In this document: one piece after another, positions 58,396 through 63,507 of the stretch
Layout: every line of letters starts with the position of its first letter
Position numbering within the stretch: position 1 is the stretch's first letter
Sequence record: NC_070936.1
Reading direction: 5' to 3' (one strand)
DNA: 64,000 nt
Notes under the pieces: model-generated
What the model saw: only the letters and a program-made list of their open reading frames with translations
What the model was told of the DNA's origin: nothing
Databases searched by the model: none
Position numbers and translations under genes: made by a program

Positions 58396-58515
58396 GTTTG
58401 AACCCTCCTAATCACTATTTCGAAATAGACCTTTATAAAAGGCATTGATCTCACTATTCAACCATCCTAGGTTCATAATAGAGAGAAGACGTCATATGAT
58501 TTAAAACTAAACAAA

Positions 58516-58560
58516 CATAAACCCCTACCCCTTCCTTTCGGAGGGAGTAGGGATTAAATG
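58516..58560 (-). terminator. Hairpin terminator family copy 5, closing the minus-strand RNA locus
   Basis: CCCTACCCCTTCC-TTTC-GGAGGGAGTAGGG. Confidence 0.75.
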
Positions 58561-59500
58561 CTTGGCTACATGGACACTCGAAAGGATAATCAATAATGTC
58601 AGGGTTGCAAATCCCGTCTCATTACAATTACCCAGACGGCTGTCTACGGTTGATGTCAACAACTTCCCCTTGGCATAGGGGCGGACCGTTTGCACTTGGC
58701 TTGGTACGCTATAATGCCATATAGTTACCTTCCAATTTCAGCGCTGTTGTCTCACCCTTGAACATCGGGTGGTCGCTCACGGTTAGGGCACGACTGTTCT
58801 ATGACGGTTCCACCAGTGCTGGAGACACTTAAATGGATACCCGTTTCGTCTAATTATTTATTGTCGCCAGACTCGTCAGATAGTACGACATACCCTCACC
58901 AAAGGGATTAGGTTGGTCCTCTGATATCGCATGAGTAACTATGTTACTCTCATAGGCTCTTTGAACATCAATGTTCAACCTTAAGTTATGCTTTCGTTCA
59001 GAAGGACCGATGGGATGTGTTCCCGCATCATCAACTCTCAAGCTCATCACAGTTTCTGCATATATAGCTAGGGTTTGTTCGACGCCAGAACACAAAGGGG
59101 TACAGCGTTCCCAACTTTTGATAGATATTGTTTTTTATGACCGCCCAGGATGGAGTTCGGGTTCTACCATCATCGATAACCCAATAGTCACGTATCGGGA
59201 GTGCATTCAGCTTATGCTACTGGACATTCTATCAAACGCGCTGCTATGTCGCCGAGGTTTACCAGGGCAACACCCACCAGAGGCTACTTACTATAGCGGA
59301 CTACCGCCGCCGTTCACACTCTGGGTTTTTAACTCGGCCTACATTGCCGAGTACTGCCTCCGTAATTTGTCTGCCCAGTGGGGCCGAACTCTACGGAGGT
59401 CTTACATCCCAATACCGTTGACTGGCAAACCCCTTCCAACCCCGGATCAACCGGCTCATTGGACCAGACTTACACTTCCCAACTTAACTGGGTTACTACA
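58561..59500 (-). ncRNA. Large structured ncRNA block 1 (~940 nt), class unassigned
   Basis: No credible ORF. Nested helices such as 58915-24/58998-59008, 59277-82/59319-24 and 59357-64/59392-99. Bounded by a tRNA CCA and a terminator; contains a hammerhead. Confidence 0.75.
58796..58890 (-). ncRNA. Type I hammerhead ribozyme, predicted GUC cleavage between 58803 and 58802
   Basis: CTAT-CTGACGA-GTCT[17 nt]AGAC-GAA-ACGG[33 nt]CCGT-C-ATAG: full catalytic core plus stems I, II and III; loop-II GCGACA is complementary to the 5' flank TGTCGT. Confidence 0.88.
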
Positions 59501-59577
59501 TGGTGGCCCTGACAGGACTTGAACCTGTGACCAGGCGATTATGAGTCACTTGCTCTAACCAGCTGAGCTACAGGACC
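59501..59577 (-). tRNA. tRNA with CAU anticodon (Ile2-like, or elongator Met)
   Basis: GGTCCTGTAGCTCAGCTGGTTAGAGCAAGTGACTCATAATCGCCTGGTCACAGGTTCAAGTCCTGTCAGGGCCACCA; encoded CCA. Confidence 0.95.
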
Positions 59578-59585
59578 ATTGCTTG

Positions 59586-59825
59586 TTATGCTTCTACTGC
59601 TTTCAGATGACGGTCAAGATCTTCGTAACCACCAACATACTGATCGTCAACTACGATCTGCGGAACAGTACGAACTGGACGACCGACGATTTCACCCAAT
59701 TTGGCGCCATCAATACCAGCTTCTACGATATTGATATATTCAACTTCAGCACCTTTGGAATCAGCCAGTGCTTTGGCGCGATCACACCAAGGGCAATTCG
59801 GTTTGCCGTAGATTACAACTTTCAT
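59586..59825 (-). CDS. grx: Glutaredoxin
   Basis: CPWC active site, RTVPQI, VGGYEDL. Confidence 0.95.
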   Translation of the reverse strand: MKVVIYGKPNCPWCDRAKALADSKGAEVEYINIVEAGIDGAKLGEIVGRPVRTVPQIVVDDQYVGGYEDLDRHLKAVEA

Positions 59826-59977
59826 TTATTTTCCTAACTGATTGTAATATGAATAAAACTGAATATCCAAATGAGGAATTCAATAACTCCCCATCCGATA
59901 ACCCCACAGATGAGACCAGCTACTATCAAGGCCCCTGTCCAGGGCCCACTAGAATAAAACATGTGTATCCCTTAAAG

Positions 59978-60054
59978 TGGTCCGCTCTGCTGGGCTCGAA
60001 CCAGCGACCGATTGCTTAGAAGGCAATTGCTCTATCCTACTGAGCTAAGAGCGG
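59978..60054 (-). tRNA. tRNA-Arg(UCU)
   Basis: Canonical cloverleaf, anticodon loop CT-TCT-AA, encoded CCA. Confidence 0.96.
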
Positions 60055-60060
60055 TGAATA

Positions 60061-60148
60061 GCTATCGGGAGTAAGATTCGAACCTACATAGTCTTACGGA
60101 CGTATCCGCCTTCGAATTCCCTCACTAAGTTTAAATAGACTATCCCGA
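60061..60148 (-). ncRNA. tRNA-like RNA A (acceptor and T-arm, no proper anticodon arm)
   Basis: TCGGGA/TCCCGA stem, GTAGG-TTCGAAT-CTTAC T-arm, TAGTCT/AGACTA helix, CGGA-TACG-TCCG hairpin; no CCA. Confidence 0.6.
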
Positions 60149-60166
60149 AAAGTGGCACTTATGATA

Positions 60167-60271
60167 GGTCTCGAGGTCAGGACTCTAACCTGACTACTGC
60201 GATGATGTCCAGTGGTAGAAACTAATCATCCACCATCACATCACTGCGATGTCTTCAACGACATCCTCGAA
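60167..60271 (-). ncRNA. tRNA-like RNA B with elongated central arm
   Basis: TTCGAGG/CCTCGAG acceptor then ACC; TGTC-GTTGAA-GACA D-like arm; ~50-nt central arm; TCAGG-TTAGAGT-CCTGA T-arm. Confidence 0.6.
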
Positions 60272-60374
60272 GTTGGAATTACACACCGAGTAACCGATAG
60301 GTGGGAAGTGGATCCCAGGTATGCGTTTTAGGCCCTGGCCTGTTGTACCCCGGTTGCACTCAGCATGTAATAGT

Positions 60375-60448
60375 TGGCTGGGGTAGTTGGGATTGAACCA
60401 ACGTCCAGGGATTAACAGTCCCCCGCTAAACCACTCAGCTATACCCCA
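60375..60448 (-). tRNA. tRNA-Asn(GUU)
   Basis: TGGGGTATAGCTGAGTGGTTTAGCGGGGGACTGTTAATCCCTGGACGTTGGTTCAATCCCAACTACCCCAGCCA; starts at the base after the HNH stop codon. Confidence 0.93.
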
Positions 60449-60916
60449 TTAAACTTTTGGCTCTATTCCTTGTTTAATACAGTTGTTGCGATATCCATCC
60501 AAATCGAATATCCCATCAACCATATTCTTCATTAGGGTTTTCATCCCCAATCCAGTTCCCTTTGCTGCCTTTCTTGCAGAAGAATAAACTACATTACCCA
60601 CGGTCCAACCATTTGGTCTAGACATCTTAACATGATTGCTCCTATGAACCTTTTCGGAATCTTTCCAATTATCCTTATGGGTTCCTATGGCAATATGTAA
60701 AGGAGAACAACATAATCTATTCCCGCACAAGTGCCTGACAACTGTATTTGGTTTTAGAGTTCCATAAATGTGGGTTGCTACTAATCGATGTGTCGTCCAG
60801 TGTTCACCATCAATAGTTATTTGACCATAACCTTCCCTAGTGCTTTTGGTCCAATTCCAGCAGCCGGTATCGGAATCAAATTTTACATTAGTAAAAACCA
60901 ATTTAACTTTTGACAT
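60449..60916 (-). CDS. Free-standing HNH homing endonuclease (155 aa; start reassigned from 61054)
   Basis: GCWNWT..GYGQI..HRLV...VRHLCGNRLCCSPLHI..GTHKDN (HNH_3 pattern); C-terminal YSSARKAAK helix-turn-helix-like DNA-binding segment. Confidence 0.9.
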   Translation of the reverse strand: MSKVKLVFTNVKFDSDTGCWNWTKSTREGYGQITIDGEHWTTHRLVATHIYGTLKPNTVVRHLCGNRLCCSPLHIAIGTHKDNWKDSEKVHRSNHVKMSRPNGWTVGNVVYSSARKAAKGTGLGMKTLMKNMVDGIFDLDGYRNNCIKQGIEPKV

Positions 60917-60951
60917 ATTAATTCCCGTTCTACCGACTGAACTACATGAGC
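60911..60951 (-). pseudogene. 5' remnant of an enterobacterial-type tRNA-Asn
   Basis: GCTCATGTAGTTCAGTCGGTAGAACGGGAATTAATATGTCA: intact D-arm GTTC-AGTCGGTA-GAAC; collapsed anticodon arm; the ATGTCA variable-loop sequence supplies the HNH start codon. Confidence 0.75.
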
Positions 60952-61615
60952 TTGGGCGGGAGTCACTAGCTCCCAGGTCAGACAATGTCCAACTGTAACT
61001 CGGTTTGATTACCTCACGGCAACCCTGCTCTGGCATCACATGGGTCTCACCCATTATCCCCCAGACTTGGCCTACGATGGCTCCTTTGGCGCACCCAACC
61101 CGAAACGCTCGCTCAAAGACTTATCGTAATAAAGCTTTAAGCAAGAGTTTAACCCACTTGACATCTAAGTCAGCACTGATTCTTACTTGCAATTCAACAA
61201 TCAGTTTCGGTTTACCTGACACCTTGGTCAATGTATCACCCGGTTTGTATCTATCACTTTTGGAAGGGCAGTGGGTTATTTGGTTTTGTCTGCGATAGCT
61301 TGGACCCTGCTCATCTGGATCTCTTCTCCGTGAGGACTGAAAGCACTATTCAAGACTAACGCTTAGTATAACGAAGTATATCTAAGATTCCGAACTTAAT
61401 CGGTAGTTGTTGAGTATCGTAGAGGGACTCGTTTCCAAATTGTGGTCCTACCATTATACAACACTAGTTAGGCTGGAACATGTAATCGCTAGTGAAGTTC
61501 CTATTCGCTGCAACGCGGGCCTAGGAAGGGAATTGGCGAACCGGCTGATCGAGGCGAATGACCATGGCTTAATCATTTCTTTTAGTGTCAACCAGTTCTT
61601 GTTCTTAACAGAGTA
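60952..61615 (-). ncRNA. Large structured ncRNA block 2 (~660 nt), class unassigned
   Basis: No credible ORF. Helices 61151-58/61270-77, 61176-81/61199-204, 61362-61386, 61462-67/61489-94; GNRA-capped hairpin 61008-61023 on the minus strand. Confidence 0.65.
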
Positions 61616-61627
61616 TAGTAAGTTCTG

Positions 61628-61849
61628 TTAATTAAATAATTTTGGTGGTGATATGATATTGGGGCGAGGTCTATAAGTCATCATGCACTTATCTATTCCT
61701 TCCTCTCCCTTTTCATTCCATATCTTAATGATTTCCTTTTCATCCAAGTACTTGCTTAAGAACTTGATCTTCCTTAGAACCCTGTCTGTCCATAGATTGG
61801 ATTTGTTCTTAGCACCCCACCACGATCTGAAGCTAATCTTCACACTCAT
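61628..61849 (-). CDS. Small basic hypothetical protein (73 aa)
   Basis: Start overlaps the end of the Tad2-like gene; phage-like composition. Confidence 0.55.
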   Translation of the reverse strand: MSVKISFRSWWGAKNKSNLWTDRVLRKIKFLSKYLDEKEIIKIWNEKGEEGIDKCMMTYRPRPNIISPPKLFN

Positions 61850-62072
61850 CCCACAGCTTCCAGTCTTCTGCTAAGAGATCAGATACTGAAGGAACCCAGG
61901 TATTGGTGATGAGTCTAACACTATCAACAATAATGAAGAAAGGTTTGATCCCAGGCACATTGTGAATACTCACGTAAAGACCTTTACCGTTCCAACCATT
62001 ACGTTGGTATTTCTTCCCTTCCTTTAGTCCTTCCAGAACTTCTGAGAAAGTAAGTAATTTAACTTTAGTCAT
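61833..62072 (-). CDS. tad2: Tad2/DUF2829-like anti-defence (signal sponge) protein, 79 aa; start reassigned from 62183
   Basis: TFSEVLEGLKEGKKYQRNGWNGKG and WVPSVSDLLAEDW are the DUF2829 signature motifs; RBS AAAGGA 6 nt upstream. Confidence 0.8.
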   Translation of the reverse strand: MTKVKLLTFSEVLEGLKEGKKYQRNGWNGKGLYVSIHNVPGIKPFFIIVDSVRLITNTWVPSVSDLLAEDWKLWDECED

Positions 62073-62085
62073 ATTCATTCCTTTA

Positions 62086-62797
62086 GGAAAAAGGCCCCAC
62101 ACCAAATACAAGGGCATGGGGCAAAGGGAAGTCCAATGGAACACATTAACCATTGGACCAAGCAGTAACCAGCTGGCGGTCACGCTTTTAATGTGGACTT
62201 GTTAGATCACATTAAAAGTGCCAGAGATTCATTTCTCTGGCTGCTCAAAATAAGCTTAAAGCGTTTGATTTTGGAGAAGTTGAGGCGTCAACTTCCATAT
62301 GTGTATTTCAGAAAACAAACATATGGAAGTAGGGTCTTTCGACCCTTCCAACCTCACTGAAGACTTCCTTGCCTTCCCTAGGAATACTATTTCTAATACT
62401 CTTAGGGAAAGCAAATGCATACCAGGAAAAGTAGTATGCACTCACCTTCTTACCTATTGTGAAGATATCAAAGCCGCGGAGCACGATCCCTTCTTTATAT
62501 TCACTCTTTCTAATTGAATGAATTATAAAGAAAGGGGGAAGGGCAGACTTCCCACCTTTGGTACAGGAGTGATGAACAATGGCCACAAAAACCCGGCAAT
62601 GAGCATTAGTGGTAGAAGCACGATGGCAGTTCGTGATTCTTTAAATGGACTTATTCTAATTAAGATCACTTAAAGAATCAGAGATATTAATCGTGACATA
62701 ATATCTCTGGCCTGTGTATTTAATCACAGCAAACGTGTTATGAGCAATGCAACTTGAACAACAAAAAGAGAAGTGGAAGAAGTTCACTTTTTGTTAC
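62086..62797 (-). ncRNA. Large structured ncRNA or leader, block 3 (~710 nt), class unassigned
   Basis: Almost continuous long helices (62131-39/62150-58, 62185-95/62208-18, 62291-302/62319-30, 62635-44/62670-79, 62679-88/62700-09); GAAA tetraloop on the minus strand (62331-46); ends in GCCCCA/TGGGGC-CTTTTT. Confidence 0.7.
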
Positions 62798-62822
62798 ATA
62801 ATATAAATAAGTTCCATTATTA

Positions 62823-62845
62823 AATAAATAGATATTATTAGATTG
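62823..62845 (+). promoter_or_regulatory. Early-type phage promoter motif (partial)
   Basis: AATA-AATAG-ATATTATT-AGAT-TG. Confidence 0.5.
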
Positions 62846-62892
62846 AATATACGTTGATATTAATTCTAACTTTAAGTATAGAGGAACTTATT

Positions 62893-63507
62893 ATGCATAT
62901 CCCAGAAACTGAACTCACTCGTCTGCGTAAAATCATCATCAACACCCTGACTGAGAAGTTTCATGTGAATCAAGTGACCGTAGAACAGGTCGACACTTCT
63001 AAGTTATATGAAGGTCATATTTGGGAGTCTGAAGTTTACGCTTTTGAGTTTATCATTAACGGTACTGATCGTTATATTACTTTTTGTACTCTGCGTTATG
63101 GGCGGACAATGTTTACCAGAGCTAAGCAGGGCATCTGTCCATCACTAGCTAAATTAATTAGACCGCATGACTTTGGGCTAATGGCTACTGGCGATTATTT
63201 AAATCGTAATGATGTGATAGGTAAGTTCATCGAGTGTCAGATAAACTTGAAAGCCCATCAACACCTACAGAGTTATTTTGCAGGTCATGCTGCCATTACC
63301 AATAAAGAATACGATGTCGCCATCGGCTACGACATTACTCGTCGACACAAAACCACAATGACCTTTGACTGTATTTTTGAAATCCTAGTCAAAGAGAAGA
63401 ATACCATTGACTTCACCAAGTATTCTGGAATGATGATCAATGGCTCCCTCACCATGTTGAATGATGTCAATGGTAAGAGTGTTAATATCAGGGACATCTT
63501 CATCTAA
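62893..63507 (+). CDS. Hypothetical protein (204 aa; start reassigned from 62854)
   Basis: ATG at 62893 behind RBS GAGGA. Confidence 0.8.
   Translation: MHIPETELTRLRKIIINTLTEKFHVNQVTVEQVDTSKLYEGHIWESEVYAFEFIINGTDRYITFCTLRYGRTMFTRAKQGICPSLAKLIRPHDFGLMATGDYLNRNDVIGKFIECQINLKAHQHLQSYFAGHAAITNKEYDVAIGYDITRRHKTTMTFDCIFEILVKEKNTIDFTKYSGMMINGSLTMLNDVNGKSVNIRDIFI

Follow-up and report, generated by a model that had tools for sequence, protein, structure and literature searches.

A large structured RNA made of repeated hairpin units, predicted beside the tRNA genes of OBP-like jumbo phages

CsrB, RsmY and RsmZ are multivalent sponge small RNAs (sRNAs), each a chain of many hairpins with a repeated unit whose copy number varies among relatives, and with a GGA motif in the loops. 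T7-type RNase III processing hairpins lie between genes along the early phage transcript. GOLLD and ROOL are phage-encoded RNAs of several hundred nucleotides (nt), found near transfer RNA (tRNA) islands; they are extensively structured, with elaborate folds containing multiple pseudoknots, and their function is unassigned (10.1101/2024.12.08.627333). In the jumbo phages 201phi2-1 and phiKZ, sRNAs derived from 5′ untranslated regions (5′-UTRs) by premature termination are described, one of which, in 201phi2-1, lies just upstream of a tRNA (PMC11512511). The present study deals with a block at positions 62086-62795 of a 64-kb stretch of DNA, hereafter the window, which is the last 64 kb of the record of Klebsiella jumbo phage N1M2 (MN642089, 253 kb); bases 61800-63000 are 100% identical to that phage. 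The block sits in an 820-nt gap (62073-62892) separating two divergent genes, a Tad2-like gene and a gene for a 204-amino-acid (aa) protein (Table 1). We propose, with a probability of about 0.6, that it is the gene for a large (~0.7 kb) minus-strand non-coding RNA (ncRNA), which would also be an operon leader and may act in trans in a multivalent manner.

The block is found throughout a group of related phages. The 204-aa protein was used as an anchor to gather syntenic loci from cultured phages (Kc263, AH04, Survivor, OBP, CF8, pEt-SU, pAEv1810, PS1, ZPAH34, AhC3_1 and AerS_266), from IMG/VR together with a metagenome, and from public assemblies. Querying viral contigs with the single protein returned no loci; an alignment query yielded three new uncultivated jumbo phages, and the metagenome scan two loci only. 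A profile of the gap (nhmmer) recovered the block upstream of the 204-aa gene in every fetched locus, with E values from 6e-192 to 9e-11 and always on the same strand and side, that is in 22 of 22 distinct OBP-like jumbo phages or contigs. These members span about 47-87% identity, and the hosts include Klebsiella, Serratia, Shewanella, Pseudomonas and Aeromonas. In PS1 and pAEv1810, the block is retained despite extra ORFs (open reading frames) inserted between it and the 204-aa gene. By BLAST, the gap is about 87% identical in the Serratia phages Yubaba and Sureiya, and 70% in the Shewanella phage SXP01. Within the 6.5-kb neighbourhood compared between N1M2 and SXP01, the block is the best DNA match (70% over 667 alignment columns, E = 6e-68), the adjacent 204-aa protein being only 45% identical. 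The reach beyond this clade was probed in two ways, with BLAST on phage records and with searches anchored on the protein, and the family is, as far as seen, confined to OBP-like jumbo phages of Gammaproteobacteria.

The non-coding character of the block, put forward in a preliminary description of this DNA, is borne out by its ORFs. Four of them, including 62299-62517 (plus strand) and 62308-62586 (minus strand), were compared between N1M2 and its seven nearest relatives. None is conserved: each carries, in every relative, 1-10 insertions or deletions whose length is not a multiple of three and which thus break the frame, and the substitutions are evenly distributed over the three codon positions, without third-position bias. 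Small ORFs are annotated inside the homologous block of OBP (OBP_015, L008:3531-3662) and of AH04 (AH04_23, L005:3843-4013). Because the four ORFs across the N1M2 block are not conserved, these two are probably not genes; they have no conserved counterpart in relatives, and the annotation of both records is corrected in this respect.

The minus-strand RNA is predicted to fold with a minimum free energy (MFE) of -275 kcal/mol. Dinucleotide shuffles give -184 +/- 6.7 (z = -13.7), none of the 20 being equally stable, and the plus strand gives z = -7.6. For 62073-62800 alone, z reaches -14.8, the values for three coding controls from the same window ranging from -1.4 to -6.0, and all ten gaps first examined fold well beyond their shuffles. 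The energy difference between strands was dropped as strand evidence, the controls folding better on the minus strand even in a plus-strand gene. At least ten hairpins, one of them with a GAAA tetraloop on the minus strand, had been noticed beforehand, and all the elements listed at that time are found at the coordinates given for them. Ten inverted repeats do have both arms within 62131-62795 (arms of 9-21 nt; three perfect, 11/11, 11/11 and 9/9), and the tetraloop is that of hairpin H12. In an eleventh pair, an interval of 94 nt separates the arms (62712-62724 and 62819-62831), of which one lies beyond the block.

Comparison of the family members shows that the pairing has been maintained. 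On plain MAFFT alignments, RNAalifold gives 23 pairs with compensatory changes for four sequences and 28 for eight. Covariance models were built from near relatives for two segments, R1 (H2-H5) and R2 (H10-H13), and both retrieve, from the minus strand of related loci, the segments orthologous to their own. Standard pairs occupy 93.9% of the cells in the R1 orthologues and 92.4% in those of R2, where 34 of 36 and 35 of 41 pairs, respectively, have changed on both sides; compensatory changes thus concern 69 of the 77 modelled pairs. In the controls, shuffling of partners leaves about 70-72% of the cells paired, and sliding the partner by 1-3 columns 41-51%. The observed values were reached by 0 of 500 shuffles, a count that is not a probability since the sequences are related.

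Covariation tolerant of G·U pairs, proposed in advance as a test for an RNA, is abundant. The seed-defined hairpin stems of ten phages contain 94 G·U as against 32 A·C, and the model-aligned orthologous stems give 63:8 and 100:12 (together 163:20), where base composition predicts ratios of 1.1-1.7. A G·T in one arm of a cruciform is an A·C in the other, and therefore no strand bias is expected for a cruciform or for a palindromic protein site. The excess of G·U in the stems, 3:1 to 8:1 over A·C, points to a single strand of minus sense, not to a DNA cruciform. This bears on the idea, raised originally by the long inverted repeats, that the block is a double-stranded DNA signal made of cruciforms, a packaging site or protein-binding palindromes. 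Besides the G·U asymmetry, the compensatory changes preserve pairing and not a common half-site sequence, and the block is located anywhere in the numbering of related records, so that we give such a signal next to no credit. Judged from these substitutions, the block is selected as a base-paired single-stranded nucleic acid of minus sense.

The hairpins are arranged in a repetitive manner. In the recurring unit, two short hairpins flank a long one of 17-20 base pairs (bp), which is interrupted by a single internal mismatch and is rich in pyrimidines in its 5′ arm and in purines in its 3′ arm. About four units, together with H1, H2, H13, H18 and the terminator, make up the N1M2 RNA. When R1 was searched against the block with filters off, paralogous matches on the minus strand were obtained with H8 (62491-62532, 26.2 bits), the H15-H17 segment (62168-62258, 20.6 bits, full length), the H10-H11 segment (62359-62466, 16 bits) and H13 (62292-62329, 10.5 bits). 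Units 1 and 4 share 59% identity (z = 3.4). PS1 and pAEv1810 each have three tandem full-length R1 matches, and OBP has extra long-hairpin modules. The units in one genome differ in sequence, each keeping its own pairing. The basal stems of the long hairpins are kept as sequence as well as pairing, CUUUCUU/AAGAA of H8 being almost invariant in the family, and the apical loops vary.

Because the unit is repeated, because its copy number varies between phages and because stem sequences as well as pairings are conserved, it may be imagined that the RNA is a trans-acting, multivalent platform on which several copies of one protein, of phage or host origin, would be bound. It would serve as a scaffold or a sponge, not as a single catalytic fold. 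We hold this more specific view tentatively, at somewhat less than even odds.

As for the neighbouring 204-aa protein, it could not be assigned to a Pfam or PHROG family, and its sequence matches no PDB entry. AlphaFold models it with confidence (pLDDT 91.4), as two alpha-plus-four-strand halves. As an RNA partner, this protein was set aside: the Foldseek matches are weak, with low TM scores (proteins of the double-stranded RNA-binding domain type, RnlA; E >= 7e-3), and are not relied on.

Further interactions may be envisaged within the RNA. A cloverleaf-like junction was part of the preliminary description, and the arms AGCAG (62245-62241) and CUGCU (62165-62161) do enclose H15-H17. The closing stem is less well established. 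By inspection, it becomes AGCGA/UCGCU or UUGCU in L025, pEt-SU and L023, so that compensatory changes are seen in near relatives only; it competes with an extended H17, and it was not recovered by MAFFT and RNAalifold on 11 distant members, where H15 misaligns. RNAalifold also proposes two long-range pairings, one between the 5′ end and the H13 loop and one between GCUCAU and GUGAGU, in columns that are invariant or nearly so and speak neither for nor against them; H1 competes with the first. Just past H11, GGAAGU (62363-62368) can pair with the 5′ arm of H13 (62291-62330), thereby enclosing H12 and competing with H13. This helix, which is RNAalifold's choice for model R2, may be an alternative fold. 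In L027 and L028, the 5′ half of H13 is kept and the 3′ half is missing.

Two conserved palindromes, CCGCGG (62473-62484) and CAGCUG in the H17 loop (62165-62183), are candidate intermolecular contacts; in Kc263, the latter extends to a 10-nt perfect palindrome, which cannot fold on itself. Such exposed palindromes would suit a self-assembling RNA-only particle like GOLLD or ROOL, multimerising by loop-loop contacts. The size class, the phage origin and the proximity of a tRNA island are the same (10.1101/2024.12.08.627333), and the sequence conservation exceeds what pairing requires. However, Rfam gave the block no match at gathering score, the whole window being scanned, and chance-level matches only at E up to 10 over 58500-63000; GOLLD and ROOL are absent from the results of both scans, and cis-regulatory families from those of the second. 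In addition, a repetitive chain of hairpins differs from the published elaborate structures with several pseudoknots. A particle of this kind therefore appears improbable to us.

Table 1. Features of the locus. Coordinates refer to the window; RBS, ribosome-binding site.
Feature	Position	Strand	Basis or remarks
Predicted structured ncRNA, ~0.7 kb	62086..62795	minus	Fold z, synteny, covariation, G·U bias, ORFs unconserved; ends inferred
P1, promoter-like motif TATATTATGTAAC	62793..62805	minus	Core-only variant of early-promoter core KATATTATY
Predicted early promoter of rightward operon (pORF256)	62812..62847	plus	PMC7058600; core and downstream TG pattern matched; back-to-back with P1
Intrinsic-terminator-like element	62086..62122	minus	10-bp GC-rich stem-loop 62094-62122, 9-nt loop; U-run 62088-62092 (U5)
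Unit 1 (H2, H3, H4, H5)	62618..62731	minus	Model R1; 93.9% paired, 34/36 pairs changed on both sides
Unit 2 (H7 and H8)	62489..62553	minus	Alignment; R1 local match on H8
Unit 3 and neighbours (H10, H11, H12, H13)	62289..62447	minus	Model R2; R1 paralogous matches
Unit 4 (H15, H16, H17)	62158..62246	minus	R1 full-length match; optional AGCAG/CUGCU closure giving a four-way junction
H1, 5′-terminal hairpin	62760-62795	minus	MFE; compensatory changes in L023, L025, SXP01, L028 (alignment inspection)
H2	62712-62729	minus	
H3	62679-62709	minus	Contains second ATATTATG copy, 62697-62704
H4	62635-62679	minus	
H5	62619-62635	minus	
H7, GC hairpin	62536-62553	minus	With U-rich tract, flagged terminator-like
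H8, long hairpin	62489-62535	minus	
Conserved GUGCUCCGCGGC segment with palindrome CCGCGG	62473-62484	minus	Invariant in six nearest members
H10	62415-62441	minus	
H11, long	62369-62414	minus	
H12, GAAA tetraloop	62332-62345	minus	
H13, long	62291-62330	minus	
H15	62220-62241	minus	
H16, long	62185-62218	minus	Covaries
H17	62165-62183	minus	
H18	62131-62158	minus	Perfect 9-bp repeat; three compensatory pairs versus Yubaba/Sureiya
Tad2-like (DUF2829) gene, 79 aa	61833-62072; with RBS to 62084	minus	Pfam PF11195, E = 1.9e-17
204-aa gene	62893-63507	plus	Right flank of gap; conserved beside the RNA in every member

The 5′ end of the RNA would be set by P1, H1 beginning directly after this motif. 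The minus-strand promoter-like element claimed earlier at 62797-62804 is present as ATATTATG; its sole other copy in the window lies within H3. With just two copies, both in the block, ATATTATG as a general late-type promoter was rejected for this window. The early-promoter consensus of N1M2 and OBP comprises the core KATATTATY, an upstream element TTTCARR and a downstream element AAGTG (PMC7058600). The early promoter predicted for the rightward operon in Supplementary Table 4 of the same article, at 252179-252214 of the record, is the one found at 62812-62847 of the window. Compared with the consensus, P1 reads TATATTATG, with G for Y; it has no upstream element and its AAGTG is displaced by 6 nt. 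Even so, P1 is invariant in 18 of 18 members checked, and so is its distance from ATAATATC, which is the core of the plus-strand promoter read as its reverse complement. P1 is regarded as a putative promoter. Transcription would start a few bases past the conserved phage-type core TATATTATGT; back-to-back with this core stands the early promoter predicted for the rightward operon. On either side of that promoter lie the arms (62806-62820 and 62878-62892) of an imperfect, AT-rich inverted repeat, the right one of which holds the RBS of the 204-aa gene.

At the other end, the terminator announced just before the Tad2-like gene is confirmed, with its stem-loop and U-run; the RBS AAAGGAA (62078-62084) and the ATG (62070-62072) of the gene follow directly. 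A custom scan had to be used, the 9-nt loop being outside the standard limit of 3-8 nt, and 7 of the 18 members (N1M2, Yubaba, L023, L025, L027, L028 and pEt-SU) gave a terminator in the corresponding position. In three more (Kc263, Survivor and OBP), it is seen by eye, with entirely different stem sequences, and the stem carries compensatory changes across relatives. In N1M2 and most relatives, the RNA would stop there, right before the Tad2-like gene. As there is no room for a promoter of its own before this gene, it would be expressed only by read-through. Conversely, where the terminator is absent (SXP01, L029, AH04 and L013-L016), the RNA can only be a leader. Since the terminator is missing in some members, the two possibilities considered initially, a standalone ncRNA or a leader of the Tad2-like/tRNA operon, are not exclusive, and both are supported by the covariation and by the unconserved ORFs. 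One transcript would be at once a discrete, terminated RNA and, via read-through, the operon leader; the share of each form probably varies from phage to phage.

The genes downstream of the RNA deserve attention in this context. The Tad2-like/DUF2829 family occupies the same position in most relatives; the 79-aa product at 61833-62072 is labelled 'methionine--tRNA ligase' in GenBank, Pfam giving instead Tad2-like/DUF2829. The gene directly downstream nevertheless varies among phages, being the Tad2-like gene, another small ORF or a tRNA, while the RNA persists. In the 12 annotated phage records that have annotated tRNAs, tRNA genes are found 0-2.5 kb downstream of the block.

The main rival to our proposal is a purely cis-acting leader or attenuator, with no role for the free RNA. 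It would control transcription or translation of the Tad2-like gene and the tRNAs, or would stabilise or process their precursor. The position of the terminator immediately before the RBS, without room for another promoter, is in favour of this model, as are the members devoid of terminator, which run straight into the next gene. The 5′-UTR sRNAs formed by premature termination in 201phi2-1, one of them just upstream of a tRNA, offer a precedent (PMC11512511). Moreover, GC hairpins followed by U-rich tracts recur within the block (H7, H15) and could provide a ladder of partial stops. However, no antiterminator pairing with the 5′ arm of the terminator was seen by inspection, which leaves the attenuator idea of the preliminary description without specific support. 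Some 700 nt with four or five repeated units far exceed the needs of known attenuators, the RNA stays while the downstream gene changes, and no cis-regulatory Rfam family matches in the scan mentioned above. A role restricted to cis is, in our opinion, rather unlikely.

A replication-origin element was considered as well. In such a model, the transcript would act as a primer or R-loop former, of the ColE1 RNA II or T4 ori type, or hairpins of displaced minus-sense DNA would be used for priming. The block indeed lies at a junction of divergent transcription next to an AT-rich stretch, with two promoter-like cores separated by 100 nt. It contains repeated elements, which are typical of origins, and G·T-tolerant pairing of one strand also fits single-stranded DNA. 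Against this, in most members the transcript would be closed by an intrinsic terminator, and units with different sequences that each keep their own pairing do not behave like iterons. GC skew in the window tracks gene direction, without a distinct switch at the block. Finally, the N1M2 genome is reportedly circularly permuted (PMC7058600); the record end is therefore not a physical end, and the nearness of the block to it is meaningless. An origin element is very improbable in our estimation.

Several points weigh against a large RNA gene with a multivalent product and should be kept in mind. We infer the start and the end of the RNA from motifs. P1 matches the consensus in its core only, with G where a pyrimidine is expected, and the terminator is absent in 8 of 18 members. 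Alignments fitted to a model lean towards the model's own structure, and the members of the family are kin, whereas the shuffle counts ignore phylogeny. The minus strand is more stable than the plus strand even in ordinary coding controls, so that raw energy brings no strand evidence. Pairing that tolerates G·T would also be met by single-stranded minus-sense DNA. The multivalent partner, lastly, remains putative: the 204-aa neighbour gave no clue, Foldseek finding for it no fold relative outside its own clade.

Other elements are found in the leftward operon. A second conserved non-coding block, 59091-59329 on the minus strand, lies within the unannotated stretch 58396-59500. Its identity is 77-84% in Kc263, Survivor and pEt-SU; in SXP01, a longer stretch is 73% identical. 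From five sequences, RNAalifold derives 56 pairs, of which 14 show compensatory changes, the core being nearly invariant, and no Rfam match was obtained at E up to 10 over 58500-63000. It is probably another unclassified structured RNA of the same operon. The annotated plus-strand ORF N1M2_252, which overlaps this block and tRNA-Met, looks spurious. ARAGORN calls only three tRNAs in the window, at 59.5-60.4 kb. It does not call a tRNA-like sequence at 60063-60149 (minus strand; Rfam tRNA 20.7 bits against a threshold of 29), which is 93% identical in SXP01 and whose place is that of a tRNA-Ser in Yubaba and Sureiya. An HNH endonuclease gene (60449-61054, minus strand, Pfam HNH_3) abuts tRNA-Asn and has no counterpart in Yubaba and Sureiya. 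It contains a short copy of a sequence that belongs to tRNA-Asn in relatives, which suggests that the gene arrived by insertion beside this tRNA. Other members, too, have HNH genes close to this RNA/tRNA region. Between the HNH and Tad2-like genes, two short stretches of the gap, 61122-61275 and 61390-61530, show 77-90% identity in OBP, Kc263, Survivor and SXP01; they could be small genes or small RNAs. The fold of the gap as a whole is not beyond chance (z about -1.4).

A broader hypothesis may be formulated from these observations. The RNA would be the first known of a new class of large viral RNAs, carried by phiKZ-related (OBP-like) jumbo phages; it would be repetitive, multivalent and produced early in infection. 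It would assemble into a higher-order RNA or RNA-protein particle, or would titrate a conserved host RNA-binding factor or immune sensor. The 'RNA operon' headed by it would include tRNAs, the Tad2-like anti-defence gene and at least one further structured RNA (59091-59329). We consider this wide picture speculative, with the odds clearly against it as a whole. Large structured ncRNAs with strong comparative backing are rare, and each class has so far opened new biology. The phages that carry the family are jumbo phages infecting Gram-negative bacteria, and several can be cultured in the laboratory; its 22 easily aligned members and modular build make structure determination and the identification of partners practical.

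How does this RNA relate to those already described? No description of it was found in the literature, although single hairpins of it could be among the approximately 10,000 short candidates in a catalogue of viral structured RNAs (PMC10690425). A tRNA or tRNA-like element was discarded, neither ARAGORN nor Rfam (E up to 10) indicating a tRNA in the block and the arms of the H15-H17 junction being much longer than tRNA arms. A CRISPR array or repeat-mimic RNA and ToxI-like repeats were likewise discarded, the block having only five short two-copy direct repeats. The 17-20 bp hairpins with a single internal mismatch, placed in series along the predicted transcript, recall the T7-type RNase III hairpins but are not located between genes. 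As in CsrB, RsmY and RsmZ, the RNA is a chain of hairpins with a repeated unit of variable copy number. It is, however, about twice as long and has no recurrent GGA in its loops; moreover, its apical loops are poorly conserved, whereas the basal stems CUUUCUUUAU/AUAAAGAAAG are conserved. With the 5′-UTR-derived sRNAs of jumbo phages (PMC11512511), it shares a putative phage promoter and a leader ending at a terminator ahead of an operon; for its part, it measures ~0.7 kb, has a repetitive build and is conserved across many genera. The resemblance to GOLLD and ROOL lies in a large phage-encoded RNA, supported by covariation and located near tRNA genes, and the difference in a tandem chain of hairpin units, as compared with the published description of their pseudoknotted structures. 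GOLLD and ROOL, both of unassigned function, thus share with the block RNA a location beside phage tRNA genes, and a third, unrelated family at such a place suggests that the association of large RNAs with phage tRNA islands is a general one, which calls for an explanation. As a kind, large structured phage RNAs next to tRNA genes were already known; what is new here is this RNA family, its repetitive build and its host range.

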